DNA of 64,000 bases from contig OZ037767.1 of the NCBI GenBank assembly GCA_964035545.1, forward strand, positions 11,914,581 through 11,978,580, given 5' to 3'. Each line of letters begins with the position of its first letter. Positions within the stretch are counted from its first letter, which is position 1. The notes under the pieces are model-generated. The model was given only the letters and a program-made list of their open reading frames with translations. It had not been told where the DNA came from and made no database searches. Origin of the DNA: Bugula neritina. Lineage: Eukaryota; Animalia; Bryozoa. Position numbers and translations under genes: made by a program. Shown one piece after another: positions 17,355-38,694 of the stretch.

Positions 17355-20300
17355 ATGAGATTTTCTTCAAGTATGCTGTTGGCATTAGGCTGTTTCTACT
17401 TCTGTAAAGTTTATGCCGTGCAAAGATCATGTAACAGCAGAGAAAGACTTTGCAAAACAGGGCTTTGTAGAATTGAAAAGTGTTCAACATGTGACATTCA
17501 TGACACTTTTTGCATCACTAAAGATCCAAAGGAAATAGTGCCAAAAAATCTCAACCCTTTAACTCAATACTTAACAATCAATTACATCGGTCCTTTAGTG
17601 GAGTTGAGCCAATCTTCGTTTACCTACTTACAGCGGCTAAAAAAAATTACTATTATTGGTAAAAATATCTTTTCTATTGCTTCTGGTACATTTGCACATT
17701 TAGAAAATTTATATTTAATTAATGTGACAAACTCAAAAGTTTCCTTTCTCCCAGATAATCTATTTCATTTCAGTTATCGAATCCGTTATTTTTATTTTGC
17801 AAAAAATCAGTTCACGTCTTTTCCTGTGAATATCTTTCGAGAACTGCCAGTTGTAAGAAAAATGGATTTTTCTTACAATCCTTTGAACAGTTGCAAAACA
17901 AACAAAGCTACTATCCCTCCTGAGTTTGCAAATCTTTCCAAACTTTTGACATTAAAATTGATAGGGTTTGGTAAAAGCCATGATGACTGTAAAAGCGTTA
18001 GTGTGGACTATTTTAGTCCTCTGCAAAACCTAACGACAATTTATTTGAGTGAATCTCACATATTTGCTGCTGGTGAAAAAGTCTTATCATCAATCACAAA
18101 TCTTGTGAGTCTGTTTATTGATAATTTACCGCTGTTCAAGGACTGTCCAGCCAATGCTGCTAATCTGTTTCACTATCTACCTAGAAGATTGGCTTTTATA
18201 TCCATGCGATTCTGGACAACCACTCAGCCAGCAAACAAGTCCTGTTTTCTAGTTCACACAACACTCTTGGGTTTAAAGAAATTGCCTAAGTTATCATTCT
18301 TGGATACTCGATTCAGCGATAAAATCTTTGGGCCTAATCTTTTCAAATCAACATTTGAAGGATTCCCTAATATCCATACATTGTACATTGGTTGGTGTGG
18401 AATCTCATGGATAGAGGAAGATGTTTTCGAGTCTTTAGTAAAATTAAAAGGTTTAATATTGAGCGGAAATCTATTGGGACCAAGAAAATTCAAATTATAC
18501 AGCAAAACTGTGGTATCAAACCTTAACTCCCTGAACCTAATTGATATTGGAATTAATGATGCAAACTCTTATGAACTATCAAGTATACTGGATAACTTTC
18601 CCAAACTAGACCGTTTGTATTTAGACAGCAATTTTCTCAAAGTCATTCCAATATTCAAAAATAATGAGGAGACTAATTTTAAATCGATTAAATTGTACGA
18701 ACTTAAGTTGAATAACAATCACATAAGTCAGTTTTCCGGAGACAATGCTAAAAACCTATGTCAGGTTATGCCTCAACTAAAATCACTCTTCATGGAAAAC
18801 AACAGACTAACTGACCTTTCCGAAATTTGCACAACTATAACTATTCTGCAATTGAACAATAATCATATCGGAAGAAAATTAGAAAAAAACTTCCGTGCTT
18901 TAGCAAGGTTGTCAAAACTAAAGACTATCAATTTATCATTCAATGAAATTGAGTACATTCCTAGCTATTTGTTTGAAAACATGTCAAACTTACGTACGAT
19001 TATGTTGAGTAGAAACAGAATCAGTGCATTGCCACCTAACTTGCCTTATTTATGCCCAAAACTCACAGTTTTAGACTTTAGCTCAAACCTCCTATCTTCT
19101 TTTGACAAATCAAATATCGAGAGATTAATGAGGATTAGATCAATATATTTACAAGACAATTCAATTACCTCAATTTCAAAAGGCTTAGTAGATATCTTAT
19201 CAAACAATTCGAGACATATTAAAATATTTGCTGTCAATGGAAATCCACTTATTTGTTCATGTGAGGACCACTTTAAAAACTGGGTTGAAAATTCATCTAA
19301 TGTGATGCTACCAATGAATATTACATGCACCCCACCTGAATCAAGCAATAAAAGTATTTCAGTTAAAGTTGTTGACTACCAGCCAGATCAATTTTACTGT
19401 TTTGTTAAAACTCCTTTATTAATCATAAGCGCTGCGTTAGCTGGAATAGCTGTTAGCCTAATCATAGCCTTTCCCTGCTACAAGTATCGCTGGTATATCA
19501 GTCATTGTAGCTTAGTATTAAGAGCTATGACAAAAAGAATTAAGGAAGTAAAGTTTGAACAGCAGTGTGAGTATGATGCCCTGGTGTCATATGACAGGCA
19601 GAGTGAAGCAGACACTCAGTGGGTGGTACAGCATCTCATCCCTCACATAGAAGAAAATGAAAATGTAAATGTGAGTGAAATTAACCTTTCAAATCCAATT
19701 ACCTGTCAACAGTATATGTTATCTCTAAATAAGTAAATCTCTTTGAGGTGCCAATTTTATGGCAGAGGCATACGCAAACTCTTCTTTTTATTCATGCCAG
19801 CTGTTGCTTTGCTTTACATTTTGAATATTTGAATTTTGGTATAGAAACTGAATCTATTCATAACTGATAGAGACTCTGAGCCTGGTGCCAGCACATTCCG
19901 TGAGCTATGTGAGACAGTACAGAAGAGCAGAAAGATAATAATTCTTCTCTCAAACTCATACCTCCTTAGTCCAGCCTGTCTTTATCAAACAGAGTTTCTA
20001 GCAAGTAACTTTTAAATATATTATATAATGTAAATTTTATCACTTGTATCACAACTTCTTGCTTATAGATTATATTGACATGTCACTGAGTTCAAGTCGC
20101 AGTAGTTTGAGTACTCACCACCAACAGTACATAAAATACACTGAGTCAAGTCAGCTTGTAAAAAAATAATGAGTAGATATGACTCAACTCAACTCAATGA
20201 AGTAATTTAACTCGAATTGATATAAGCACGTTGAACACTCCTTTTTTTCAAATTTAAAACATCTCAGTCATGAAATTGTTAAACATATTTTTAGTATTAT

Positions 20301-22366
20301 AGGGAACTAGTTTTCTAACTAGTTTTCTAGTTGCCTAAAAGTTTTGTCATCGATTCACATACTAAAGCTTTTAAGTTTTTGAAACTTCATTTATTCTATC
20401 AGAAAATAAAATACTGCTCTCACACGGTTAAGGTTTGATACAGGAAGGAGAAGGGTTTGAAACATTATTATTTATATGTACCATAAAAGCTGTTTATGCT
20501 CTTTCATCTGTTTCCTGCTACTTTAATAAAAATCTAGCTGCTGCTTATTGGCAGCTAAATTTTTAGGGCTAAACAAGTAATTAGAGCAAGTTTTGATGCT
20601 TATCATATTATAGCCTATGGCCATACACAGTCATACTGTAGTTAAGCATAATGATTGCACCTAGCCGTATATATTTTTACTCGTTTAATTAAAATAATTT
20701 TGTTAAATGTGCTGTACCAGCTTGTACAAATTGTTTTGGATGCACTGCTTTATCAGAGGATGAAATAAAAATATCTATACTATTTACGAAACGAAAAGGT
20801 TATAGTAAAAAGGCTGGAAGAAAAAATGCTATCGGCAATAAGGCCTAAAAACAATGCTGAAAATTGAATTATTTGACTGGTGAGTTTTTCAGCATTAAAA
20901 ATTGTTGCTATATTTACATGTGTAGCAAAGGCTGTTTTTACATAGGCCTACTATAGGTGCAAGACAGTGCAAATCCTGTAAGTAATAGCAAGATGTAATT
21001 TGGAAGAACACAAGATAATGAGCAATGTTAGTGCATCAACTGCCTAATATAGATAACCAGGATTCTTTTGCATTGACAAATTGTTATGTTTGACTGTTAT
21101 GTTAGAATAAAGTGTTGAAAAACTAATAAAAAAGTGCAAATATATTTTTTTAAACAAAAGACTTAAAATTTAAAAAAGTTCTTCTGAAGCTAGAAAACAA
21201 TTTGAATACTTTATTCAAGTAGCATTGAAATCTCAGTACAAAGGCCAGGAGGAAATTTGAGTGATTGTCAATGCAGAAAGTCTGCTTTGTAAATATTGTA
21301 AATGTTGTTAGCAGTTTTAATTCGACTCTACATTTGTAGCTTTTGTTCATCTTCAATTAGCGGTTCTGTTGCTTGCATGCAGTGGGTTTATCTATCACTG
21401 CAGATGCTAGTATGGAGGATAATGTGAACATTTATCAGCCTAACAGAATACTTGTACTAATCCTAGAAGAGCTCAATGAAGATATAATTAACTCACCAAT
21501 GACCTCTCTACTTACTTCAAACACATGCATCATAGATATAGTAAGATGTCTTTTAAATTTTCTTAATTATATGTAACATTTCTTTATTTGCTTGATTATA
21601 TTTTTATGTGTATTGAAAACCCAGCTTTTCTGTTATAATATCAAAAGCGACTATATACTTTTACAGTGATTATTTAACAAGTTCTCAGTAGTTATATTGT
21701 AGTTTCAGATTGGTATTTCAAGTACTCTAAAATGGGTTTGCATACAATAAATATTTTTCGAATAATATTCAAAAGAATCATTTGAAAAATAGTGGTGCAT
21801 TAGCATAGTCCTGTGCATTATCATAGTTTTATCAAATGTATTACACAACTTTTCTAAAGTCAAAAGTTTTTATAGGTGCCTTTTTCTTGCTTTTCAATTA
21901 TTTAGAATACCTGATTTTGTACATCATTAGAGCACAGAGCGTCATTAAATGGCTACCTGCTGCAAGTTTTTTTATAGTAATTATAATTGGTACTATAAAA
22001 AACTAGATATATATATATAATAATATCAATAATTATATCTAGAACAGTATTTACTGTTGAACGAATCAAACCTATGCAGTCAAGGTTTTACCATCTTCTA
22101 TCTTATAGGCAATTAATAATTTATTTTGCTAGTATTATCATTTACTTGCATATGTTATGCTCTTATGTTATGATTTGTTTGATTACTTCAAGACTAAATG
22201 CCATGACAACAAGAAAAAGATGGAACGGGTCTGGAAAAAATTGAGATACTTCATTTCAACACCCAATCGGGTCTATAGCAAGCAAAAGCCTAAGAAATTG
22301 AAGCGATGGGCTAGCTACAAGCGTATGCAGTTTTCAGAGCATGAAAGTGAACAACTTATTGTTTAG
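17355..22366 (+). CDS. Toll-like receptor A (signal peptide, LRR ectodomain, LRRCT, TM, TIR)
   Basis: Exons 17355-19670, 19845-20004, 21404-21540 and 22193-22366 (~928 aa). Motifs: LxxLxLxxN repeats, NPLICSC LRRCT, TM LLIISAALAGIAVSLIIAF, TIR box1 YDALVSY, BB-loop DRDSEPG, SRKIIILLSNSYL, box3-like VWKKL. Confidence 0.95.
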
Positions 22367-25300
22367 CTAAAGTCAGTGCTATAATTTGCACTTGTCAAGG
22401 GTTAATTACAATATTTATAGCAACTAGAGTAGCACACTATTTGTTTAATAATCTTTTTGTTAGGTGTGTTCTAATAACTGTTGAATTTTAACATCTTTTT
22501 AAAATTTTGTCATTCTCAGAAATTGATTTAATTAGAGATGCATCAGATCATAACAGTCTGCAGTCGACTGAAATTTTTGCCAAACTGACGTTTTTTAGGA
22601 AAATAATTTCCGTTACGTAATAGTCGAACATTTAACATTTTATTATGTTACTTGTCTCAACATGGCAATCTTCTATCACATTAGTTGCTTAGTCATACCT
22701 GTTCATGCTATATAATATATATAGTGATATACTTCCTATTTGTCTATAACCAGCTCCTTATTTTTCATACTAATATCGTATTATGCTTATAGACTTTGCT
22801 AGAAACCGAAGACTTCCCAACAGCCATATTAACTAAGTTATCCATTACTGTTGATAGGTCTAGTTAGGCTATAAAAGATCCTTATTAAAATAGAGCTAAT
22901 GACCAGTTTCTGCATAAAATATGGTGTGCTAATTTCAATTTACTAACTTTTCAAAGATTTGATGCTCTAACAAACTTTAATTTCATAGTTATGAGCAAAC
23001 AACTCTCATGTGACAATAAAATGTTAAAGCTGGTGATACACTGAACACGGTGTGGTACATAGCTCAGTAACTGCACGCTTACAAGTTTACAAATGAACTA
23101 GAATTTTCAATATAATCATCAATTTACTTAAATAGTATTTCATCAATTCTAGCTGCAAAGAGAGTTTCAACTATTTTAAAGACAAATATTTTTAAGTCTT
23201 TTCAAAAAGCTGCAATAAAATAATAGACTAAAGAAAAAACAAAGCTAAATGACATGCACCTGTTAAGTATGCTATATAGTAAATTTGTGTTAGAAATCAT
23301 TTAATTCAAGCAGCACATTTGCTTTTCTAGATGACTTTACTTCATCCTCAATCTGGTATTATTATTATCTCAAGATAACACGTTGTGTTTCCAATAAGCA
23401 ACATGTTATTTATTTATTCCAAAGAGGCTAAGAATCTTGTGCTTTTAATTTAACGTATTCTCATTAAATTTAGGTAACAATAGCATTTAGCTCAGAAAGC
23501 AATTATAAGTTTAACCCAGCTATCAGCTGACAAAATTTACTAATTTTAGCTACATTGATGAGAATAAAATATAAAAATAGATGTCTACTTAATTAAACAA
23601 TTATCACATTAACGTACATTGTCAACTGTTGAAATATTTCTAAAATAAGGCTCACAATAATTAACAAACTGATTGTTGTCTTGAACCAGTTGATTCAGTG
23701 TCTATAAAAATTAAAAGTGTCCTAATTATTTTAACTATTGTAAATTGATTTGAATGTCAGATAGAACAACTGCTGCAACTTATTTTCCCTGACTACAGAT
23801 AAAAGTCAAAAACTAGTTTGTTAGTAGGTAGTAAGTTTTCTTTACATTTATACGTTTAAACAATGGTTCACATATACCTATATGCGAAAGTTTTTCTTTC
23901 TGTTTTTCAATTTTATACTGTAATTTTAAACAGTACATCTTTGAAATTTTGAAACAAAACCTCAGCTTTTAAACTAGCTCTGATGGTAATGAAATTGTTG
24001 GCTAAAATAAAGCCTCTTTCCTACCACACTTCAGTAACAAAAATAATGTTTGAATAAAACTGTTTTTTATGCTATTGATACAGTCTTGTGGTTTTTGAGT
24101 TTTGGTTCATTTAAAAAAGCAGAAGCAAGTTAGGGTTTCTGCTCAGTAAGTAGATCAAATATTTCCCATCCTGAAGGTCAAAAGGGGCTTTAATACTAAT
24201 AGATAATCCCAGCAATAAGTTTTCAGCAGACATGTTCCTTCTACTGATTGCTCTCTTACCAGGTCAAGATATAGATTCTGTCACAAATTGTATTTTGTTA
24301 ACATTGCTGCTATTAAACTTGTTGTATATGTAAACACCCACCTTCTTTGCTTATGTAAGGAATAGCTATAAGTACTAGCAAAATGTGTAAAACTTTCACC
24401 TCTTTGCTGCAACTATTGACTGTTGAAGGTAAATTTTTTACAACAAAACAAAGAATAGAAAAGATGTGGTCGGACCTTCCTATGCTAGTTGCATTTACAC
24501 AGCTCAGAGTCTCAGCTATATATAGTATCAGCTTATCTAATGGCAATCTCATATGCAGATGAATTATTGTAAGTAATTATAAAGTGCACATTTCATTGTA
24601 TATATTTGGTGATGATGGGAAATTATAAGAGATGAAATAGATAAATCGAACAGAAAGCATTAAACATTGTGCTATATTGCCAGTAATTGCTATCCCTGTG
24701 GGATTTCCGATAGGCATTATGTCTGGATGCTCTTCCTGACATCACTAATAGTTTTTACTGAGCCAGTAATGCTGCTGCACAGCATTTAGTGGTCTATAAG
24801 TTGCTATAATATGTATAATAAATCTAAAAAATATAACAATATATAATACATTTAGCTAGTGTAAATTGCCTCCCAGTTTCTGAGATTTAGCAACTGCTAT
24901 GTTTTTCATTGGTTAGAAGTGAGGCAAAGTTATTTATGAAAAATTTTCTCATTTTTCTCATTTTCTCATTTGAAAAAATAACGTCAGTTTCATTGACTTT
25001 ACAGTAATGACTTTACAGTCGTCTTGATGCATGAAAAGGCTCAGATTAGTATCTGATGGCAAACCACAAAATACTTGGCTTTCCACAATAGATTTCTGCA
25101 AAATAATAAATAAATGTAGCGAGAAGCGCCAAAAAATCGAGTCTTCTTGGAAGTCAGTCATTATATGACTAAAATAACAACAATGCTCTGCTGCCTATTT
25201 TTTGCTGATATTTTTAGTGTATAAAAGTGGCATTGTTTTCATTTTATGTTATTTAGTGGCTGTTAGTTGTACCCAAACATTTGAAACTTAAACTGAAAAT

Positions 25301-25774
25301 ATTCAACAAGACTTGACTGGCAATAGCAACAATCTACTATAGCTAATTTATTCAACAGAAATTAATATAATTCATGGAGAGTAAGTAAACTTATATAATT
25401 TACTGTTGGAATTTTACCAAGAGCATGCTTTCATATTACATATATAGCTACATATAATATCATGGCAGTAGTTATTTAGCTATACAATGTAGGCCTAGTT
25501 AATGTTATATAATATAGATATATCAATCATTGTAGTGAAAACAGATACCTTTCAGTAAAAATAGAAATTATTAAAATATGCAATAAAGTCTTAACTAAAT
25601 GTATGAGTTCTATGGTCGTGAGATTAAAATTTTCAAAATGCTGCTTTGTGCCTCCTCAATCTTGTATGTTGTGTTAGACAACTCACTGTGTGTAAAACTA
25701 AAGTCTGATTCTTTTAAGGAAATTATTACATTAAGGTTTTAATTGTTTCTCTTACAGATATCAACAGACAAGAA

Positions 25775-28700
25775 ATGTTTGTGTTATCAATGATTTTGCT
25801 AACATCAACATGGTTATCTGTGGCCAAGTCTTTGCCAGCTTTTAACCATCCAAACCAAACAACATATGATAACATGCAAGAATTTTTAAACTATAAAGCA
25901 GAAAGTGCTGAAAACTTTCGTGTGTTTGGTAACAAGCAGCTCAGTTTAAAAGCGGGTAATAATTCATTAAATTCATTGTCAAGTACCTATGAGATACCAC
26001 CAGAAAAATGGTTAAAAGATGAAGAGGTGAATTTGAGCCAACGGCAGCAGCGCACCAAAAGAGGTCAGCCAGTTAATGATATGAGTGACAGCATTTTGGA
26101 GTTAATCAATTTAAGTCAATCTAACAAGAAAAATGATGGTATGAATGTACTGAAGACAGAGCCAAACTTCAATGTATCTGTAAGTCGTCACGACCCGGTG
26201 ACTGTTGACTCTAAAAGACTCTCAAAAATTGTTAATTTCATGCAAAGAGATTGCTCAAAAGTGCCTGCCTATAGAAGCCCGATCAAGTGGGTGTCAGATA
26301 CCACAGCTATCCGATTTCAATGTGTAAATGGCGCTTGGGTAACCCGATATATAACCAAGTTTAATGGAACTCCTAAAGCAAGCTCAGTAAAAGGTAATAT
26401 ATGATCATGAAGTTCAACACTGGCATACAAGAAATTTGTTGACTAAATACAATATTACTTCATTCATTCAAGTTGTTTTACTCATATTATTATGCTAGAG
26501 CATTATAAGAAAAGCTTGAAAATTTAAAAACTGATAGTAGATGCATTTATTTTTTATAAGAATAATGAATTCAACTCTAATTCAATGATAGTTTTTGAAA
26601 AAAGGCAACGAAAATGTTTAGCCATGCATCTCCAAGTGTATGTTTCTTAGTCTAGAGTAATTTTTCTAGATAGTTGCAATATTTTCAAACATTGAAACAC
26701 CAAATTAGTTATAAGCTACTTTCCAATTGCTATAAGTTTCATTTTTAAAAAGCACCCTCCCTTTGTATGTGGTAGGAATACGTTCCAGTTTGTTTGAAAG
26801 GAGCTGATCTCATATGTTTCTTCTTATATAACTGTGATAGATTCTCATCCTCTACTGTAACTGCGTGTGTCAGTATTATAATTACTGTTGCGTATACTTT
26901 GAATGCTGTAATTGTAGCTAAGTTGGGCTAGCTTTCTAATGCCTTATTATTGTGATTGTTGTTAAAGCTTTCAGTATAATGTAATTTTCATGAAATACGC
27001 GTTTCCAGAGTTATTTTCCCTTTTTGCTATTTTATCGTTTTGCATTAATACTGATACTGGAAATTTGTGTAGCTTTTATGAATGCCTTCAATAGGTTGTT
27101 ATTATAGCTAAATTCTTGGCCTATTGAATGATTCATTCTCCTTTGTCTATTTTTTTTTGTTACTGTCAAGCTTAACTTTCTTTTGTCTGTTGGAACATTC
27201 TAGATGTGAAATCTTGTGTATAAAAGCAGGCGAGTTTCCAGTGTAGATTCAGACTACTACTGGAGCTCGCTGGTAGTAGGACCACATAAGCTGTATCTGA
27301 TACAATAAAGGTTATCCTCATTTGTACTCAAATACTTGGCTTATTCTTTCTAGAGCATGTAGGCACTAGTTGCATTCAGAACCCACAGTTTACTACATAA
27401 CTTTATGTATTACTTTAGTGATAGACACAAGTTTTATTGTTAATTCAACTGGTTCAACTTAAACATATTTTTATAAAAGCATTTGTGATAAACTCTATTA
27501 GTGAATGTTAGGACAGATCAAGTCACATCAAAAGATATTTCAAGAACATTTTGTAACCATTTTAGATTGCAATGATTTACACCAAAAGCAGCTACAAGGT
27601 AAACTTAGGTATAATGTCACTCGTTTGACCATCAGATATGAAAATGGAGAAAGCAAGAAAATGAAAGTTATGTGTAAAAGCAAGAAGAATAAACCTGCTG
27701 ATCATACCAAGAATGTCAAGCAACTTGTTACAGGTCAGGTTAAATTTCTTTTTTGAATAGGTATGATATGTATTTCATAGGATAATCACTCTGTATATTT
27801 GACTGAATATTATAGATTGAAAATGAATTATACTTCGCAAAGAATATTTAAATAATCAGTACAACTCCCTGTAAATTTATAGTTGCTATCACTATAAGAA
27901 ATTTAAAAAAACAACTTTTAGAGCAGGTTAAAGAAAATTGTTTAATGTGTCGCTAAAATAATTTAACCAAATGCTCTTCTTGGCATCAGCAATGGCGTTT
28001 GAACTCAGACCGCTACCCAGGCTAGCACTCTAATCACTATGCCATAGCTAATCTCTGGGTTGTCAATACTCGTGCAATTGTAAACTGTTGAAATGCTATA
28101 ATAAATTTATGTGTTTCACTATAATATGCACAAACTGAGCCATAACTTGAGTTTATACTCATAAATACATTTCAAAGTGGGTAGATAACCCCAGCTAGCA
28201 AGAAACTTTAAAGAAATAGTCATCATACAAATTTAAGTTTATTGATTCATTACAGTTATTTTCTGCAGCATCTTGCCTACAGTTGTTATCTGAAATGTTT
28301 TAATTACAGCCATTGCCTAAAAAACTAATTGCTGCAGTAAAATCATCTTCGATCTTTAAATGTACGTACTGAAAGATTTGGTAACTTTTACTAGGTGAGT
28401 GGACAATAATACAAAGGAGAGTCAATGGAGACGTCAATTTTTATAAACCTATGAGTAAATATGAGGAAGGATTTGGGAACATGGAGAGTGGTGAATACTG
28501 GTTGGGTGAGTCATTCTAATTTACTCACTCACAGAAAAACATTTGTTCGGAATTATTTATGTTAATAATGATTTCTTACCAGATTTATTGACTGGTTGCC
28601 TTAACAAATCTATAATTTTTAATACTTGGTCAGTTTTTGTGCTTTTTCCTGTTAATTAGCAAGTGGAAAATGTTTTGTATTTAAAAGCTGAAGAAACTAA

Positions 28701-29970
28701 AACTAAGCATAATTTATTGTTAAAAAATTGTTATTTGTTTGCTGATTGCCTGACAAGTTTGTTTTATGCATGATTGGCTAAGTTTGCTCAATACATATAA
28801 TTTAACCATGAAGTTTTACGGTATCTAATTTCTCTTCCATCAACATAATATATCAACAATGATGTGAAGTTTCTATTATTGTTGACAGGTTTGTTTGAGT
28901 TTTTGAGGTTTTAGGTTTAAAGAATCTCCATGACATTACCAGTGTTAGAGATTACATGCTGAGAATAGAGATAACAACTGGGAGTAATATCACCTATACC
29001 AGTGAATATAAAAAAATTGAAGTTGGTGACCGAAAAAGGGGATACAGGTCAAATCTTTATCTCAATATAATTTTACGAAAACTAAAATCAATATTTTAAA
29101 GTTGCTACATTTTACCAATATAATATGAACTAAATAGTTAATTCTTTCACAAAATGTCAATTATGAGTTATCACAACCTATATCAATCAGAAAAATCTTT
29201 ATTTGCATCTCTAAAAAGTTTATGTATATGAGCTCAATGTGTTTAATAGAAAATCTATGCCAAACTTAGTTAGAAGTTCATTTGACTTCTTCAAAGTTGG
29301 CTTAGTTGGGTATTAAGGCTCAGATCTGTTGATATGTTTTAGTTTCTAAAGTTCAAAGTGTTATTGATTATAATAGCAGCCTATTCAGTCCGGTTACTTT
29401 ACATTGTGATAAAGCGTGTGTGCTTGCCCCTTATAAAGCATGAATTACATTTTACCGAGTTCATATTTGGTAATATTATATTGATGTACCCGCCAATCTT
29501 CTCTTTTATTTATGTAGTTGCAATTTTTTTTATACCCGTAGAAGTTTCTTGTTTTCAACACACTATTATTTCATGATGCATCATGTAAATGGATGATGTG
29601 CTGGCAAAGACTCCAGGGTCAAACTATCCTTAACTGCATGCTGAATATGATTGAAACAGTGCGGGTTTTTTGTAGATTGAAGCTTGGTAATTTCCTCGTG
29701 CCTTCCAATCAAACTCTGTCATCTGGAGACTATCTCTCATCCCATAATGGTGGATTATTCCAAACCAGAGATTTCGCTCTGCTCCGAAACAACTGTGCCA
29801 GATTGTACAAAACAGGATTTTGGTTTAAAGACTGTTGGTCAAGCCTAAACCTGAATGGCCCTTACATAACAAGAAAGAACAAATCTGGTATTCACTGGGC
29901 TAAAAGCAATCCTAATAAAATGGTCTTTGTGTGGAAAACCGAAATGATGATCAAATCTTTAGCCAGTTAA
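25775..29970 (+). CDS. Secreted fibrinogen-related domain (FReD) protein with long N-terminal pro-region
   Basis: Exons 25775-26393, 27566-27733, 28395-28505, 28915-29047 and 29676-29970 are in phase. Motifs: GEWTIIQRRVNGDVNF, YEEGFG, GEYWLGLKNLH, LRIEI, NCA...GFWFKDC...NLNG, TEMMIK. A probable 5'UTR exon donor lies at 25381. Confidence 0.92.
27960..28050 (-). mobile_element. Decayed tRNA-derived SINE fragment
   Basis: The minus strand reads tggcatagtgattagagtgc...gagttcaaacgccattgctgatgccaagaagagcatttgg, homologous to the SINE at 52351. Confidence 0.55.
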
Positions 29971-30650
29971 TAACATGTCAATCTAACAATTTATGTTAAC
30001 CTTCATCCTATCGATATATTTACATACAAATTTTACCAACTGCATGGGGTTCATTTGGACCCCCAAGTATACAATATGTGAATTCTTTTGAATAAGTATT
30101 GACAACAAACAACATTTTTAGTCAGAACTTATTTTATTAATTAAAATGAAAAACCTATAACCATACAAACTGCTCATTAGCAGCAGTTAGTCTATTCTAT
30201 CTAAGCCATAATTATTAGAACATGATGCCCTTAAAAATAAGCACAGTTTCATATTGTAATAATTCTGGCGATTATTATTGAGTGTGGATTTCGTACATAC
30301 AATGGTATTTTATCCAATCAACTATTCAAATAAATTACTCAGCTGCTAGCGTAAATAAAGAACTATATTTATCATATATACATAAAATATAAGAAAGAGA
30401 CACATCCAGTATCTAAGCCACATTCACCGTCTAGTTAAAACCTGCTACCTTTATCAACATACTACTCTTAACTAACTATACAGTCCTCTGGAAACATTCT
30501 GCTCCTCAGGGGGTAGTCACGTGCTTCAACAATATTGGCTATTATGAACGTGCACGATATGTACGCTTCGCTAGCCACTACACCGCCCCCTCCAGCAGGG
30601 AGCCCACTTCCTGCTAAACTCAAAGTGGGGAAAGAAGCGTACTACACAAA

Positions 30651-30658
<8 letters not shown>

Positions 30659-30714
<56 letters not shown>

Positions 30715-30717
30715 TTT

Positions 30718-30756
<39 letters not shown>

Positions 30757-30759
30757 TTT

Positions 30760-30808
<49 letters not shown>
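30659..30808. repeat. (TA)n microsatellite with a duplicated aatattttttgtgt interruption
   Basis: Directly visible. Confidence 0.95.
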
Positions 30809-30810
<2 letters not shown>

Positions 30811-31346
30811 GTTTTTGCTCTAAGCTAACAAAAATTAAAAATTACATCTAAATAATCAAGGTTCTTTTAATTTTGCCTAATTATCCATGCTTTTTCCTAA
30901 TTATTCAGCTAATTTGGATTTGCTGACAATCACAACAAACAGTGAGGGTCCAATTTCGAGTGTGTACTAAATTAGGTAAAGTAACCGTTATAGAATTATT
31001 AGCATTGGTTCACCTTTTACAAGGGGCTGTTCAATTTACCCTTCCCAAGTAAAATCTTTATGCATTTAGTTTTAATGGACAAAGGCAACAACATATGACT
31101 GCATTTTATGGTGCTGGTCTTTGGATTGGCAAGGAGAATAATTTCTTCAAAACTTATGCTTAAAACCGCTATTTTTGGTTCAACTAGCCCCACCCTCACC
31201 TATCAGTTTTAGTAAAACTATAATTATGAACATATATAGTCTTAAGTAATATCTGATGCAAAAGTAAAGGAGTAGTAATGTATTAGTATTGTTCATTAAA
31301 CATTAGAGACTGTACAAGAGCTGCAATGGAAGTGAGTCTGGGTTAA

Positions 31347-33383
31347 AGGATTGCTCTATCTTAGTTTATTACAATCACATTATAATTATGAACTATAATC
31401 TAATGTGTATGCAAACAATTGTGACTTTGCAAAGGGATATATGCCTAGAAAACAGCTTTTCAAAATTCCAATTTTGAAGGAGGTAAAATTTTCAGCCATG
31501 AAAAAGAATAGCCTAATACGTGACGTGTGAACGCCAGTAACTATGCTGCACGTGCTAACTATAACGCTAGTATTCAAGGTTGCTGAGCGCAACATCAACC
31601 AATAACGCTCAAGCAGTTACAGTGCGCTATATAGGTCAGCTTTGGTGTGCCCGTAATATTGCACAATCTGACCTAGTTTAGATCAATCGCAGGCATTCAT
31701 CCTAAAGAATGCATGTTTTTGCAATGCTTTTTTCTATGTTTACAAGCAAAATATTGTAATGGATTTTAGATTATGTTATTATCGAAAGGATAACTCTTTG
31801 TGGCTTACTCTCTATACGCTGGGCATAATGGCTATAAGTACTGGAGATCAATTATCATAATAGCTGACAATTGGAATGCGTACAATCTGCTGGACAATTA
31901 TTGCTAGTTACTAATGCACGCAGTTAAACAAGGCAAGACTAATTAAATGGAATCAACAACTGTAGGAGGCGTAGATGGTTTGCACTGGCAGTTAGCTGCT
32001 TAGTAGCAGATGCTAGTGTTACCCCTCATTCACACTTACCGTATCGTACGCCGTAACAGCAAAAATAAAATGGCGACGCTGTTGCATTTTGTCAACGGGT
32101 GTTCACACATTGCCGTAAAAGTACAATGCATGACGTTGAGCTGTGACCAATCATAATAAAGCCAACTCTTGTCTGCGATGATTTGAACGCCTTTGAATAT
32201 TGTTTACAAATTATTCGCAACATTCTTATCAAAAGATGTTATATAAATGCTATTTACTAAAAAAAGCAATTACATGAAAAGAATCTTTCTTTCAAAAATA
32301 TCCGTTTTTAAAATAATTGTGGAAACTAATTTAAATAATGAATATTTAAGCCGTCCAAATCAGTTTTAAGTTTTTGGTTTGCTCGATTTTGTGATTAGGG
32401 AAAGCTAGATTTTTAAGCTGAGTTTAATTCAAACAAGCCGGATAAAGATTTTTTAATCTTTTAAAACTTTTGAATTGGTTAAATTAAATCAAAAATAAGC
32501 GAATAAAATAAACTAGCGAAAATTTTCTTTAAATTTTAGTACCAGACCAACTCTACCCAATAGGAGCCCGCCGTGATTTTTTGAATCAAGCACTGCTTGA
32601 TCAGCGCCGCAACGTATACCGGAGTACGATTTATCCCGGATGTTTACAAAAATCGCTAAAATTTGCTGTTACGGCGTACGGTACGGTAAGTGTGAATAGG
32701 GGGAATATCTTACAGTCGACAGTGGCACCACTAACGCTAGCCAATCAGGACAGTCACACTAATTGATAGCAGGTGGAGCTAGCTACTCGTAGTTGCAGTG
32801 CGCTGAGTAGCTAGCCGGCAGAGCAGCTTGGGACTTCATTTAGAGTAGTTGTGTATTAAAGCTCGCTAATTATGTAATCGTTTTCTATTCATGCTAGCAG
32901 TAAATAACCTTCTTGTATTTGTGTAAATAATAAAGTATCTTATCGTAAACAACCTGGTGCAGTGGCTTTGATTAAGTAGACCCACACATAATAATAGTGA
33001 ACTGGCAAAATTCACTACAATATGGCCTAATGTTATCACATACATGTTACTTAACATGTCAAAAAACTATAGATTGAGGTAATTCACATTTGCACTTCTA
33101 TAAATATACAAATTACGAGCTGAAAGATCACATCTCACAGTCATATTTCTATAGTTATTCATTTGTATAGTCACGTGACCAGCAAGAATGCTGGCGCTGT
33201 TACGTCACATTTCCCAGCTCATTTCAAAATCGGCGTTTTGGCTGTTACCAATCTACACCCTCAACTTCAACTAACTTTTTCTACCTTTGGTCAAATGATT
33301 TTTGTCAATGCATGCTTAGAAAAACACAATATTATGTGTGTTTGACCTAAATGGCCATTTATTAGACAAGATAGAGCAATCCT
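31347..33383. mobile_element. Non-autonomous TTAA-targeting DNA transposon (Kolobok-like)
   Basis: Perfect 16-bp TIR AGGATTGCTCTATCTT / AAGATAGAGCAATCCT, flanked by TTAA at 31343-31346 and 33384-33387. Purine-purine termini; no transposase ORF. Confidence 0.8.
32022..32703. mobile_element. MITE (PIF/Harbinger-like) nested inside the Kolobok-like element
   Basis: ~42-bp TIR cccctcattcacacttaccgtatcgtacgccgtaacagcaaa / tttgctgttacggcgtacggtacggtaagtgtgaataggggg. The TSD is not clean, so the family call is tentative. Confidence 0.7.
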
Positions 33384-33835
33384 TTAAGAGTGCTGCAAAT
33401 AGTGAGCAGAATAATCTATATACTATTCCAAATATTGAATGGCTGTCACAGTTGAGTACCAGGTGACCGTACGCTAATGGTATCAACAAACTGCTATGTT
33501 AAATGGTTGGAGCTGCTTTCCTATAGATGACGATGTTTGATGAATCTAGAGAAAACAATGCACTGCTAACCAGATAGCAACAAATGCTGTGATGAATTGT
33601 ATGTTTTAAATTGGTTATAAAAAGTTTCACCTGTGCACAAAAAGTATATTTAAGGCTAATGCAAATATTGCAACATGCATTGCAGTAACTTCTGAAAACA
33701 TGATTTGCTATGCTGATCAACTTATAATGCATATGTATATATTTGCACATTATTTGTAATTTTTACTGTTAATTTTGAGTAGGCCTACAGCAATATTATT
33801 ATTTTGCATAATACCTCAAGCAGATTTTATTTTTC

Positions 33836-36800
33836 TCAATCAGAAGTAGCCAATCTTCTTCCTTTCTTGCACTTTCTTTTCTTGTAGACAATATGAGGTG
33901 CTGATATAAAATTGTGTATCTTTTTCCAAACTCTTTGCATCTTTTTCTCACTATACTCATACTTGAAATATACACATAATATTTTGACTCTATAAAAAGT
34001 TTTTTTTGATAACAAGCAGCAAACAACAAAACTGCAAAAGTATTTCTTGTAGTTATTTTTAATTGAACGCCATTAGCTGGTATCATTTGGAAAACAAAAA
34101 ACAAAAAAATTTAATGCTTCCCTGTATTAATAGAATTATCAGTTTGAAACCTGGCCAGTAGGTGCTGCACTTTTTGTGCTTTACTCTGATATGGAAAAAT
34201 ATAGCATGAATCTAAAGCAGTCAGGAGTACAAACTTTTAGATATGAGTCCATAATTAGGATAGCAAATAGCTACTTTTGCTTTTGAAGCCTGCAAAAAAT
34301 TTTATTTATTGCTGGCTATCACAATGTGAAAAAAGTTAGAGAGGCCAGATTTTAGATAGGAATGCATTATGCCAGAATTCATCTAAAAATAAACTTGACT
34401 CGCCTTTACAGTAACATCCATTTCAGATATATCACTGAATGTTTAATTGCAATAGTGAACTAGCACCTCTTGATTTGGATAGGTGTGCAACTTAGAATGT
34501 GTTATTTGGTGAATTATACAAAATTAACACTCACCATATTGATCACATTTGTGTTTGAAGTAAGAAGAGAGGTCATTGGTGATTTAATTATATCTTCATT
34601 GAGCTCTTCTAGGATTAGTACAAGTATTCTGTTAGGCTGATAGATATTCACATTATCCTCCATACTAGCACCTAAAAAGATGCTCAATGTTTCAGCTTGA
34701 ATTTACTTTGAATGATAATATAAGGAAATTGCTGTAATAGTTCGAACAAAAGTCTTCCTTGTTTTTCTAAATGTTTTCAGCATAAATGTTAGGCAATCTA
34801 ATTTATTGAGCTCACTAAGATATTTTTTAACTTTCTGAGTGAAGGCCAATTTTCTAATTTTACAGATTAAATCTTTTAACAACTCCTACAAAATGCTATA
34901 GTCATATGATAATAGATAACTAAGGTGCAACAGCAATACATTTGTATCGACACATTTTCACAGTACTACAGTGATACAGTAATTAATTGCTGCAATAATA
35001 CCGTAATTAGTACATTATCACAGTAATATAGTAGCATCATATTACAATAATATAGTAAAACATTATTACAGTAATACAGTATCACCACACTTCAGTGATA
35101 TAAGCAATATTATAGATGAAAGTCAAAAGTCAAAGTCTGGAAAAATTTGTGGGGGGGGGGGAATTTACTCTAACAAAAGCTACTACTAATTATTTTAATG
35201 TCCAACATGCCATGGTTCTTCAAGTTTCAAAGCCTTATAAAGTAGGATACTAAGAAAAAATGGCAAAGTGATTTTTTCAACTTTGAGGCAAAATAAGTTA
35301 GAAAAAAATAATGACTATTGAGTTCTAACGACATAAGTATAGATACTTGTGAGCTGTATCTGTAAAAACATAAACCAGGTGACACGTTACAGTAATACAA
35401 TAATACCGTGATGCATTATTGTAGTGTTACAGGAAAGAAGTTTTATATAGAATTGCAACAATCCAGTCATTTGCATTTAAATCCTAGATGTTAAAAATGG
35501 ACAGTGATTATATGGTTACATGCAAGTAAGATATACAATATTTCAAAAATATTCTTTTGAAACAAACAAAAAACCTGCTAGAAACTCTGTTTGGTAAAGA
35601 CAGGCTGGACTCAGGAGGTATGAGTTTGAGAGAAGAATTATTATCTTTCTGCTCTTCTGTACTGTCTCACATAGCTCACGGAATGTGTTGGCACCAGGCT
35701 CAGAGTCTCGATCAGTTATGAACAGATTCAGTTTCTGTAAAATAAAAATTAAGAGCAAATTAGAAGCTCACTGTAGTTATGTTAAATTTTATTCAAAGCA
35801 GTACATGGAAATCAAATCTGGTCAGTCACTCATGGGATGGAAGATAGGATATACACGACAAAACTGAAAATGCTGAGGCACATCTTTAGAATCAATTGTG
35901 AGAAGCAAGTTGAAAATGAGTTGATCAGAAAGCAGACTGAGTAAAAGAAAGATGAACAAAACATTGGAGGAGAAGACGTCTGCAGTAGTTTGGGCATGTT
36001 GGCAGAAAATAAGACAACGGTATTTACCTCTTTTTCAACATAGAGATCACAAGTATACAAAGAAGAAAAAGACCTTGACAGGTGCCGTAAAATTTAACAA
36101 GAAGCCATAGGTTTTTAAACAAGAAGATGTCAACAGCCGAGTCAGATAGCGATCGCTGATTGACCTTGAAGCCTACATTACAGCTACCCATGCAGAGCTA
36201 CAGTTGCTTGGGTGAGATAGATGACAAAGTACAGTTTTATAGAAAATATGTTTGTGACAAAACCAAAAAGAAGCATGTTATGAAAAACTATCAATTTATT
36301 AAAGTGAATGGTTAGCATGGGTGATATTTTCAAATCTGACAGGTAATTTAATTTAGGCTGTTTACTCACATTTACACTCTCATTTTCTTCTATATGAGGG
36401 ATGAGATGCTGTACCACCCACTGAGTGTCTGCTTCACTCTGCCTGTTGTATGACACCAGGGCATCATACTCACACTGCTGTTCAAACTTTACTTCCTTAA
36501 TTTTTCTTGTCATAGCTCTTAATACTAAGCTACAATGACTGATATACCAGCGATACTTGTAGCAGGGAAGGGCTATGATTAGGCTAACAGCTATCCCAGT
36601 TAACGCAGCACTTATGATTAATAAAGGAGTTTTAATGAAACAGCGAAATTGATCTGGCTGGTAGTCAATAACTCTCATAGTAATACTTTTATTGCTTGCC
36701 TCAGGTGGAGTGCATCTTATGTTTTTGGGTAACACTACAATAGATGAATTTTTGATCCAGTTCTTTAAATCGTTGGTACACGTGCAAATAAGTGGGTTGT

Positions 36801-38694
36801 CATTAATTGCAAATATCCCAATGTACTTAAAGTCTCGTGATAAACTGTCAAGCAAGTCATTAGATATTGAAGTAATGGCGTTGTCTTGTAGATATATATA
36901 ATTGAGAGCCTTCAGTCCTTGAATATTAGATTGATCAAAAAAAGATAGAAAGTTAGAGCTATAGTCTAAAGCTCTCAACTTTGGACATAAATTAGGTAGG
37001 TTAGGTGGCAGTGTACTGATTCTGTTTCCACTCAACATAAGTATTGTTAGGTGCGGCATGTTTTCAAACAAGTATCTTGGAATATACTTAATTTGATTGT
37101 AGGATAAGCCTAAAGTTCTTAATTGTGGTAATCTAGCAAGAGCACGGAAGTTTGTTTCTGCCATTTTCCCGATGTGATTATTAGCCAAATGGAGAATTCG
37201 AAATGTTGAGCATATCTTTGAAATATCAATTAGTTTATTGTTTTCCATGTACAATGCCCCAAGGTAAGGCATAACTCCACAAATGGTTCCTCCACCTGCA
37301 TCTGAAAACCTGGTTATATAGTTATTATTCAATGTGAGATGCCTTATTTTAGTATGCTTATAGTTAGTTTTAGTAAAAGAGTCATCAAATATTGGAATAA
37401 CCTCAAGAAGATTGCTATCTAAATACAAAGTACCAAGTTCTGGAAAGTTGTCAAGCAAACTTGACAAATCATATGGTATAGCAGAATTAATTCCAATACC
37501 AATGATGTTTAACACTTTTAATTTTGAAATGAAGGTTTTATTGCTGTACAACTTAAACTTACGAGGTCCTAGAAGATTCCCGCGCAATGAGAAATCTACT
37601 AATTTTTTTAAAGATTCAAAAGCATTTTTTTCAAATGATGAAATTCCGCACCAGCCAATATACAGAGTATGAATATTAGTCAACCCTTCAAATGTTGACT
37701 TTATGAGACTAGGGCCAAAAATCTTATCGCTGAATCTGGTGTCGAGAAGTGACAGTTTTGGTAATGTCTTCAGACCTAAAAGTGAAAAATGATTTAAAAA
37801 ACAAGATGTGTTAGCTTGCTGAGTTGTTGTCCAATATTGTATGGAAAGAAGAGCCAGTCTTTTAGGTAGATGGTGAAACAGATTGGCTGCATTTGCCGGG
37901 CAGTTCCTAAATATAGGTATGTTGTCAATAAAAAGATTAGTGAGATTTTCAAGTGATGTAAGAATTTTCTCACTGGCAGAGAATATGTTAGATTCACTCA
38001 AATAAATAGTAGTAAGGTTTTTTAAAGGAGCAAAGAAACTTTCACTGATGTCCCTACAATCATCATGGTTTCTGCCAAAGCCTATTAATTTTAATGTCAA
38101 AAGCTGCGTTAAACTTTCAAATTCCGGTGAAATGGTGGATTTATTTGTTCTACAACTATCTAAGGGATTGTGAGAAAAGTCCATTTTTCTCACATTAACA
38201 AGTTCTTGAAAAACATTTGTTGGAAACGATATAAGTTGATTGCTTGGAAAATAAAAGTAACGAATTCGGTGGTGATGATGGAAAAGGTTGTTTGGCAGTC
38301 TTGATAGCTTGGAGCCAGTCACCTTGATTAAGTATAGATCTTGCAAATGTGCAAATGTTCGAGAAGCAATTGAAACTATGTTCTTGCCTTCAATTGTTAT
38401 TGTCTTCAAGTTCAACAAATGCTGAAATGTTGAAGAACGTAGCTCTACGGGCGCACCAATGTAGGTAAGAGTTAGATATCGAGTGGTAGAGGTGAGATGT
38501 CTAGGTACCACTTCCTTAGGATTACTGGTAGTACAGATAGCATTGTGTATATTACACTTTGAGCATTCCTCTATTCCACAGAGTCCAGTTTTGCAAAGTT
38601 TATCATCATTTTCACAGAATCTTTGTACCGCCAAACTTTCCTTACCAATAATGATGGTCCAAACCCAAAACAGTACTTGATATGACAGCTTCAT
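33836..38694 (-). CDS. Toll-like receptor B, paralog of TLR A in convergent orientation
   Basis: Exons 38694-36370, 35734-35575, 34671-34535 and 33961-33836 (~915 aa). Intron positions and phases and internal exon lengths (160 and 137 nt) equal those of TLR A. Last exon reads YEYSEKKMQRVWKKIHNFISAP... Confidence 0.95.

Follow-up and report, generated by a model that had tools for sequence, protein, structure and literature searches.

The window analysed, a stretch of 64,000 nucleotides from the bryozoan Bugula neritina (GenBank assembly GCA_964035545.1, contig OZ037767.1, positions 11,914,581 to 11,978,580), harbours two neighbouring TLR genes in inverted orientation, here termed gene A and gene B, each with four exons and an LRR-TM-TIR architecture (Table 1). 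Domain and structure searches were run exon by exon. An extracellular LRR domain was identified in both genes (Pfam LRR_8, E = 5e-30 in A and 2e-35 in B), and the translation carries LRR-CT cysteines (CSCEDHF...CTPP...YCF) and then a hydrophobic run, LLIISAALAGIAVSLIIAF, which is predicted to form a single TM helix. Exon 2 of gene A on its own scores 41 bits against PF01582 (cut-off 21.3) and matches the TIR structures of MyD88 and TIRAP, whilst exon 3 alone gave no Pfam match, and its profile gave no meaningful match to solved structures; TIR boxes 1 and 2 and a box 3-like motif can be read in the translations. Exon 1 of gene A ends at a GT donor (19671), and an RNA-Seq contig joins 19670|19845 across a GT..AG intron. 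This joint is present in X8, presumed to be an RNA-Seq run, in which B/C-like copies also show spliced exon 2-3 and exon 3-4 joints, and the intron 2/exon 3 joint of gene A is covered by a unitig of sample X1 with 0 mismatches. The intron lengths given in a preliminary description of the locus (174 versus 635 nt and 1399 versus 903 nt) were reproduced by the gene models built here, and three introns occupy the same positions in all five genes compared, namely A, B, their paralogue C and the pair E and F (intron loss 0/5). A further open reading frame, at 40394-41959, was rejected as a gene, being a minisatellite of 9-nt units.

Table 1. Gene models and homogenised patches, given as positions in the window.
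Feature	Position	Strand	Description
Gene A	17355-22366	+	4-exon TLR gene model
Gene A exon 1	17355..19670	+	LRR ectodomain, LRR-CT, TM and TIR start with box 1 YDALVSY; ORF and Pfam LRR_8
Gene A intron 1	19671..19844	+	174 nt; B counterpart 36369-35735, 635 nt; aligns only at edges
Gene A exon 2	19845..20004	+	160 nt; TIR core with box 2 DRDSEPG; Pfam TIR PF01582
Gene A intron 2	20005..21403	+	1399 nt; B counterpart 35574-34672, 903 nt; does not align to B's
Gene A exon 3	21404..21540	+	137 nt; TIR; homologous to exon 3 of B, C, E and F
Gene A exon 4	22193..22366	+	TIR end, box 3-like RVWKKL, tail; unconverted; translation, alignment, saturated dS
Gene B	38694-33836	-	4-exon TLR gene model
Gene B exon 1	36370..38694	-	ORF and Pfam LRR_8
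Gene B exon 2	35575..35734	-	TIR; Pfam TIR 41.4 bits
Gene B exon 3	34535..34671	-	Homology to other family copies
Gene B exon 4	33836..33961	-	Tail shorter than in A
Patch 1	A 19376..19708; B 36664-36337	+ (A)	Similarity reaches ~38 nt into intron 1
Patch 2	A 19845..20003; B 35734-35576	+ (A)	97% identity; final exon nucleotide 20004 unconverted
Patch 3	A 21405..21525; B 34670-34550	+ (A)	Exon's first nucleotide 21404 and last 15 nt unconverted

The two genes share a homogenised tract of 577 nt, distributed over exons 1-3 and encoding the juxtamembrane, TM and TIR regions, in which dS between A and B is 0.11, compared with a saturated value of ~2.6 in the ectodomain (Fisher p = 5e-34). Identity had previously been described as jumping at the LRRCT/TM boundary and as collapsing once more over the final 15 nt of exon 3 and throughout exon 4, and both changes were located. 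The 5' switch falls in a transition zone between 19325 and 19376, where site patterns change from BC|A to AB|C, and the 3' switch lies within exon 3, between 21513 and 21526, with dS saturated again in the final 15 nt of that exon and in exon 4. In 30-codon NG86 windows, A-B pS ranges from 0.6 to 0.98 over codons 1-660 (except two windows at 0.38 and 0.49), drops to 0.05-0.22 at codons 661-870 and rises to 0.86-1.0 in exon 4, and an inverted-repeat search returned the ectodomain at 72-73% identity and the three TM/TIR pieces at 88%, 96% and 90%. Mismatches between A and B number 26 of the 577 tract positions; the earlier counts were recovered exactly, with 11 mismatches falling in 19410-19670, 6 in exon 2 and 5 among the 122 leading nucleotides of exon 3. 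A permutation test, our own implementation of GENECONV logic on third-position polymorphic sites, gave 19376-21465 as the best A-B fragment (p = 0.0008; 10,000 permutations). Per-patch dS is nearly equal (0.11, 0.12 and 0.12), each value being derived from 3-5 synonymous differences.

The introns, described previously as lacking similarity, bear this out: blastn at word size 7 finds similarity between those of A and B only in three short edges, which adjoin the 3' end of exon 1 (~38 nt), the 5' end of exon 2 (~18 nt) and the 3' end of exon 3 (~28 nt). The first of these edges, in which A and C are identical at 29/38 positions (background 10.3 +/- 2.8), is similar across A, B, C and D and could represent a conserved element rather than converted sequence, since in E/F the homologous stretch is coding. 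Between the introns of B and C, 400 nt can be aligned at 76%, of which 211 nt belong to intron 2, and those of A, edges apart, align to neither, such that intron relationships follow the ectodomain tree. In the orthologous pair E and E', whose third-position divergence is like that of the A-B tract, introns are still 84-85% identical and alignable throughout; co-converted A-B introns would therefore have been detectable.

In the ectodomain, the three genes are related as (A,(B,C)), at support values of 100/99, and the AU test rejects a grouping of A with B (p = 0.0024). The branch separating A from B/C shortens from 0.47 in the ectodomain to 0.017 in the TIR partition, where B+C receives 83/83 and A+B is not rejected (p = 0.21). 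Given this weak resolution, a supported topological conflict inside the TIR was rejected, and the case rests on the collapsed branch together with dS, which between A and C is saturated in the ectodomain and 0.27 in the TIR. Polarisation of the tract sites with E/F gave ~12 AB-derived and ~8 BC-derived sites, interleaved and conflicting. Orthologues of A, B or C were sought in sister species, where the exon 1 product retrieved only relatives at 40-46%, namely E/F-like fragments, and a 190-aa query spanning the boundary matched none; an exact 22-mer and a protein-guided scan of metagenome contigs likewise found no A/B/C orthologue.

The same homogenisation pattern is present in paralogue C, 2.2 Mb away and oriented like A, and in the E/F pair, whose members lie 1.4 Mb apart and have unalignable introns. 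Because of this, the inverted arrangement of A and B, which the preliminary description had considered favourable to pairing, is dispensable. The further claim that the tract is continuous in mRNA coordinates does not hold. Positions 20004 and 21404, which flank intron 2, both differ between A and B and both show the state in which B equals C (p ~0.004 for both being unconverted); the residue encoded across this junction, at codon 826, is N or G. In E/F, two homogenised patches are separated by a diverged stretch formed by the final ~80 nt of exon 1, and are thus discontinuous in mRNA coordinates.

The reading that we favour, at a probability of roughly 0.8, is that the TM/TIR regions of A and B have been homogenised by interlocus gene conversion that was recurrent and proceeded in short patches, each templated by DNA and confined to one exon; that conversion is limited to the TM/TIR exons is strongly supported. 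A and B would be ancient TLR paralogues, their ectodomains at synonymous saturation, in which the coding sequence for the juxtamembrane/TM/TIR part was homogenised, probably on several occasions, with the genomic DNA of the paralogue as donor. Strand invasion and re-annealing would require homology on both sides and, with introns long diverged, every exon would constitute a separate homology island. Patches would be confined to single exons because the diverged introns provide no homology, each one either ending at least 1 nt inside its exon or spilling over by a few tens of nucleotides into a flank that is still similar. Purifying selection on the TIR would preserve a baseline identity sufficient to start conversion, and conversion would then sustain the identity that permits the next round, whilst the ectodomain would be spared either because it is too diverged for pairing or because selection for distinct ligand specificity purges converted variants. 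Several receptors with differing sensors and a near-identical signalling module would result. We infer this short-patch, DNA-templated mechanism, its recurrence and any selective benefit from the tract, its boundaries, the dS contrast, the non-aligning introns and the repetition of the pattern in C and E/F. A genomic DNA donor is indicated by the broken exon-exon junction, the E/F gap, the apparent bleed into intron 1, the partial coverage of the CDS and the absence of intron loss; the near-equal dS of the patches, however, would also be expected from a single event, which counts against repeated ones.

Two mechanisms had been offered in the preliminary description, repeated short conversions and conversion from a spliced cDNA or RNA, of which the former is retained and the latter is disfavoured by the unconverted junction nucleotides and the E/F gap. 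With a spliced template, acceptor introns would loop out and stay whilst three exons were converted in one event, which would suit both the confinement of homogenisation to exons between unalignable introns and the equal A-B dS across patches; the same argument from dS far below intron divergence has been made for fungal ribosomal-protein paralogues (bioRxiv 10.1101/751792). However, the two unconverted nucleotides beside intron 2 are adjacent only in mRNA, similarity runs ~38 nt into intron 1, the tract starts and stops within exons, and five members keep all of their introns, some of which cDNA recombination would be expected to delete. Transcript-templated (RNA/cDNA) repair that kept the acceptor introns, with the junction nucleotides left by patchy mismatch repair, is very unlikely; if true, it would be a natural animal case of such conversion in an immune receptor family.

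It is also conceivable, though very improbable, that no exchange took place and that the TM/TIR exons are extremely constrained even at synonymous sites, by splicing enhancers, RNA structure or codon bias. In keeping with this, TIR dS is ~2.3-fold below ectodomain dS in B-C and E-F as well, and GC3 is slightly raised in the TIR (0.37-0.39 versus 0.31-0.33 in the ectodomain) of all five genes, outgroups included, a difference that is not specific to the tract. Against it, synonymous sites in the TIR approach saturation when the A/B/C clade is compared with the E/F clade (pS 0.61-0.68), and between E and E' their rate of divergence is much like that seen in the ectodomain (third-position identity 0.92 and 0.94 in TIR pieces, 0.91 in the ectodomain). 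Judged from these sequence comparisons, TIR synonymous sites are free to change. The boundaries are, moreover, abrupt and inside exons, and only the branch between A and B/C collapses so strongly, by ~28-fold compared with 1.6-2.6-fold on other branches. A single large replacement of the 3' half, introns included, through segmental conversion or exon shuffling and followed by rapid intron turnover, would fit a tract of ~2.1 kb genomic length in A with similarly diverged exonic parts, but is extremely unlikely: B's introns still align to C's, and are therefore B/C-lineage originals, A's align to neither, and orthologous introns at like synonymous divergence remain alignable, as seen in E/E'. 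Near-identical paralogous exons are a recognised polishing hazard, yet the chance that assembly or polishing pasted the exons of one paralogue onto the other is almost negligible. The residual A-B differences within the tract, and X1 unitigs covering 21181-21434 and 21514-21920, which link homogenised exon and A's own intron without a single mismatch, rule out the assembly collapse raised in the preliminary description; in addition, A's exons were recovered at >=93% identity in two studies, including 2016 runs, and both C and the E/F pair show the pattern as well.

The system was initially put forward as undescribed, but homogenisation of LRR-CT/TM/TIR with a diverging ectodomain has been published for mammalian TLR1/TLR6 (Kruithof et al. 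2007, PMC2077338) and for the vertebrate TLR1 family, including avian TLR1A/B and TLR2A/B (Huang et al. 2011, PMC3125219). As in TLR1/TLR6 and the avian genes, the bryozoan paralogues are neighbours whose homogenised tract takes in the last LRRs/LRR-CT, the TM and most of the TIR and stops short of the TIR end, whilst the N-terminal ectodomain diverges; the published reading of the vertebrate genes is that of a common signalling module with diversified sensors. The converted region of vertebrate TLR1/TLR6-type genes lies within a single coding exon, and one continuous tract suffices. In contrast, the bryozoan TIR is split over four exons, the patches are separate and bounded by exons, the introns that lie between them cannot be aligned, and the A/B pair is inverted rather than tandem; the host, too, differs, being a bryozoan. 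For TLR1/6, conversion has been shown to recur independently in different species. The A/B pair is a clean invertebrate example of the process known from vertebrate TLR1/TLR6, extending to a lophotrochozoan a mode of TLR evolution, with diverging sensors and a homogenised module, that has so far been documented in vertebrates, and the pattern is present in two independent paralogue groups of the one genome.

In the fungal ribosomal-protein paralogues, exon-only concerted evolution was ascribed to cDNA donors (bioRxiv 10.1101/751792, citing Derr & Strathern 1993 and Storici et al. 2007 for cDNA/RNA donors). The likeness lies in homogenised coding sequence with introns and flanks far more diverged than synonymous sites; unlike the fungal tracts, that of the bryozoan is interrupted at an exon-exon junction and inside E/F exon 1, appears to bleed into intron 1, takes in no more than part of the CDS and is accompanied by zero intron loss. 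Region-restricted conversion, with other ectodomain parts staying diverse, was reportedly described for the clustered protocadherins by Noonan et al. in 2004; these are a different gene family, in which variable exons are spliced to shared constant exons. Because its TIR is split by introns, the bryozoan locus amounts to a natural experiment on the limits of conversion tracts, which end at exon edges where homology ends, and the junction-flanking nucleotides provide a simple discriminator between DNA and spliced-RNA templates. TIR-based TLR phylogenies will be misleading in such genomes, where ectodomain and TIR need separate analysis.

Variation in other samples bears on whether exchange persists. 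In fragmentary A-like contigs from X4 and X8, which represent a sibling lineage, 8/10 differences from A fall on paralogue states, as do all listed exonic variants that can be assigned to the A locus in X1. Since the differences lie mostly on paralogue states, these sequences suggest that exchange is ongoing, although they derive from Logan contigs, which may be chimeric between near-identical paralogues. Bugula neritina had been reported to be without TLRs in two surveys (PMC8609888 and PMC10279657); the genome holds at least five genes with TLR architecture, by which this literature is corrected.

The window spans C3:11.91-11.98 Mb in a genome 216,009,554 bases long and contains two convergent Toll-like receptor (TLR) genes, A and B, whose introns begin and end with GT..AG throughout and whose exon frames join without stops. 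The gene models reproduce exactly the intron lengths of the preliminary description (174/635 and 1399/903 nt in A/B). The product of exon 1 comprises an LRR ectodomain (Pfam LRR_8, E = 5e-30 in A and 2e-35 in B), followed by an LRR-CT, a hydrophobic TM segment and box 1 of the TIR. Exon 2 by itself passes the Pfam TIR cut-off (41 bits vs 21.3) and matches the TIR structures of MyD88 and TIRAP, with the remainder of the TIR encoded by exons 3 and 4; domain and structure searches used single exons, one at a time, and exons were joined only for codon alignment. From this predicted domain order, A and B are genes of TLR architecture with the TIR divided among four exons. The GT..AG joint 19670|19845 between exons 1 and 2 of A is present in a probable RNA-Seq run, which also contains B/C-like copies spliced from exon 2 into exon 3 and from exon 3 into exon 4. 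According to two surveys, Bugula neritina is without TLRs (PMC8609888; PMC10279657). At least five LRR-TM-TIR genes are nevertheless found on chromosome 3, alongside additional TIR exons on C2 and C7, and the surveys may have missed them because the TIR exons are short and split, only exon 2 being detectable alone.

Coordinates of genes A and B, their relatives on chromosome 3 and other features (window positions unless given in Mb or by locus)
Feature	Position	Strand	Description
Gene A, exons 1-4	17355-19670, 19845-20004, 21404-21540, 22193-22366	+	TLR
Gene B, exons 1-4	38694-36370, 35734-35575, 34671-34535, 33961-33836	-	TLR
Gene C	9.68 Mb	+	A/B relative
Gene D	12.56 Mb	-	decayed relic, stop codon in exon 2
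Gene E	6.77 Mb		more distant four-exon TLR
Gene F	5.36 Mb		more distant four-exon TLR
Intron 1 start, A	19671-19708		conserved stretch
Intron 1 start, B	36369-36337		conserved stretch
Intron 1 start, C	L012 4600-4637		conserved stretch
Intron 1 start, D	L013 ~7567-7600	-	conserved stretch
5' switch of tract	19325-19376		juxtamembrane/LRR-CT region
3' switch of tract	21513-21526		15 nt short of exon 3 end
ORF between A and B	29593-29967	+	C-terminal part of fibrinogen-related domain (PF00147, E = 1.5e-11)
Microsatellite	30649-30816		(TA)n, ~150 nt
Minisatellite	40680-41813		1.1 kb, 9-nt unit TAGAGTAGT-like, ~125 copies
ORF	60815-62005	-	DDE_1 transposase domain (PF03184, E = 2e-23)

Across the ectodomain A and B are 72-73% identical, whereas the three pieces of the TM/TIR module reach 88%, 96% and 90%. 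Computed over windows of 30 codons, pS ranges from 0.6 to 0.98 through codon 660 (except two lower windows, 0.38 and 0.49), drops to 0.05-0.22 in codons 661-870 and climbs to 0.86-1.0 in exon 4, whilst dS by partition is 2.6 in the ectodomain vs 0.11 in TM/TIR (Fisher p = 5e-34). A GENECONV-like permutation test returns 19376-21465 as the best A-B fragment (p = 0.0008). The windowed synonymous comparison and the GENECONV-type test, both suggested in the preliminary description, each recover the homogenisation that it had claimed by eye; its mismatch counts (11, 6 and 5) were exact, and the loss of identity that it placed in the last 15 nt of exon 3 coincides with the 3' switch. Within the tract, 26 of 577 positions still differ. 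Sensitive blastn agrees that the introns lack visible similarity, except for short stretches at exon edges: ~38 nt following exon 1, ~18 nt preceding exon 2 and ~28 nt following exon 3.

The same chromosome carries four genes related to A and B, namely C, D, E and F. The ectodomain places B and C together as sisters (dS 0.62), with A distant from either, at saturation; the tree (A,(B,C)) has support of 100/99, and an A+B grouping is rejected by the AU test (p = 0.0024). For the TM/TIR partition, A-B dS is 0.11, A-C and B-C both stand at 0.27, and the branch between A and B/C falls from 0.47 to 0.017, whereas other branches shorten only 1.6- to 2.6-fold; inside the tract, B+C is supported at 83/83 but an A+B grouping is not rejected (p = 0.21), and polarising its sites with distant outgroups gave conflicting, interleaved signals. 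These trees rest on paralogues of one genome; a search for orthologues of A, B and C in sister species retrieved none. The relic D (L013, chromosome 3, 12554000-12563999, - strand, ~6964-7688) consists of an exon 1 end (~70% identity) and an exon 2-like piece (85%) that carries the in-frame stop, with no recognisable ectodomain upstream; its intron flanks are similar to those of C, and it is a decayed member of the family.

Similarity of the TM/TIR exons could also arise from constraint on synonymous sites, from replacement of the whole 3' part, introns included, followed by intron turnover, or from misassembly, and controls remove all three. In comparisons of the A/B/C clade with the E/F clade, synonymous sites of the TIR are almost saturated (pS 0.61-0.68). 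A JGI metagenome contig (L016) carries the E orthologue of a sibling lineage (91% amino-acid identity); between the two, the ectodomain has a third-position identity of 0.91 and the two TIR pieces 0.92 and 0.94, so synonymous sites evolve at about the same rate in TIR and ectodomain. The introns of this orthologous pair, whose synonymous divergence resembles that of the A-B tract, are alignable throughout at 84-85% identity, so co-converted A/B introns would still align. B introns do align with those of C (400 nt at 76%, 211 nt of intron 2 included) and A introns with neither, which indicates that introns share the history of the ectodomain. Against an assembly artefact stand the 26 residual differences and X1 unitigs (from a sequencing run of another sample) that cross between the introns of A itself and the homogenised exons without a single mismatch (21181-21434, 21514-21920). 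In L016, the E orthologue is without 130 nt of the exon 1 end (L016 3905-3907 vs L014 4398-4527, L014 being the E locus) and the gene call breaks at this point; the gap may be genuine (a deletion or pseudogenisation) or an error of the metagenome assembly.

The preliminary description left a choice between repeated short conversions and a spliced cDNA/RNA template. Separate patches templated by DNA are favoured, on four grounds, over a tract copied from a spliced template and running through the exon junctions, and the continuity at the mRNA junction is not seen. Nucleotides 20004 (last of exon 2) and 21404 (first of exon 3), neighbours only in mRNA, are both unconverted, codon 826 across this junction being AAT in A and GGT in B and C; this is unexpected for a tract crossing the junction, and random placement of 26 mismatches would leave both junction nucleotides mismatched with a probability of ~0.002 per junction (0.004 for two junctions). 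If each patch needs flanking homology inside its own exon, junction-flanking nucleotides would stay unconverted. A-C similarity also enters intron 1 by ~38 nt (29/38 vs a background of 10.3 +/- 2.8, maximum 22 in 20,000 draws), although this stretch is homologous to E/F coding sequence. The three introns are retained in all five genes (A, B, C, E and F), and in mRNA coordinates the homogenised patches of E and F do not form a continuous tract. That dS is equal in all three A-B patches (0.11-0.12) is also compatible with a single event, but each patch holds only 3-5 synonymous differences.

The E/F pair (L014 4300-5177 vs L015, the F locus), 1.4 Mb apart, independently displays exon-bounded homogenisation like that of A/B. 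Identity is ~93-95% from the LRR-CT through the TM to the TIR start and 92% in exon 2; exon 1 is diverged over its final ~80 nt, and introns 1 and 2 are both unalignable. The start of intron 1 is conserved in A, B, C and even the relic D, and its first ~38 nt may constitute a conserved intronic element. In E and F this stretch is coding, the donor site lying 21 nt further downstream than in A/B/C, so the donor site shifted in the A/B/C ancestor.

Exchange among the paralogues may be continuing. A 9-kb contig from another run (X4), A-like across the diverged stretch 19300-19330, has the state of B and/or C at 8 of the 10 listed differences from A (binomial p at most 8e-5), and in X1, of the same species, the listed exonic variants that can be assigned to gene A (19361, 19362, 19371, 19646, 19891) all match paralogue states. 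As residue of recurrent short conversions these variants are suggestive only, since near-identical paralogues can be fused into chimeras in Logan contigs. X1 and the assembly differ at five positions inside 30 nt of A intron 1 (19765-19793); allelic diversity in the species is therefore high (~2% in one 225-nt contig).

Conversion of this kind, which the preliminary description took for an undescribed system, is already published. In mammalian TLR1/TLR6 the last LRRs, LRR-CT, TM and most of the TIR are homogenised and the N-terminal ectodomain diverges, independently in nine species (PMC2077338), and the same pattern is reported for the vertebrate TLR1 family (PMC3125219). The A/B case belongs to this known type, differing in its invertebrate host, its inverted arrangement and its intron-split TIR, in which conversion is visibly exon-bounded; a further particular is that this genome shows it in at least two independent groups of paralogues. 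In fungal ribosomal-protein paralogues, homogenisation restricted to exons, with introns diverged, was ascribed to cDNA donors (bioRxiv 10.1101/751792); in long-lived mammalian conversion pairs the tracts include introns (PMC2720389).

Elsewhere in the window, the ORF with a fibrinogen-related domain probably represents a single exon of a FReD lectin-like gene between the inverted TLRs, and the DDE_1 ORF is probably a pogo/Tigger-type transposon remnant. The minisatellite gives long spurious ORFs on both strands (including a 521-aa 'SNYSKY' repeat), and the microsatellite is the source of most short intergenic 'inverted repeats'.
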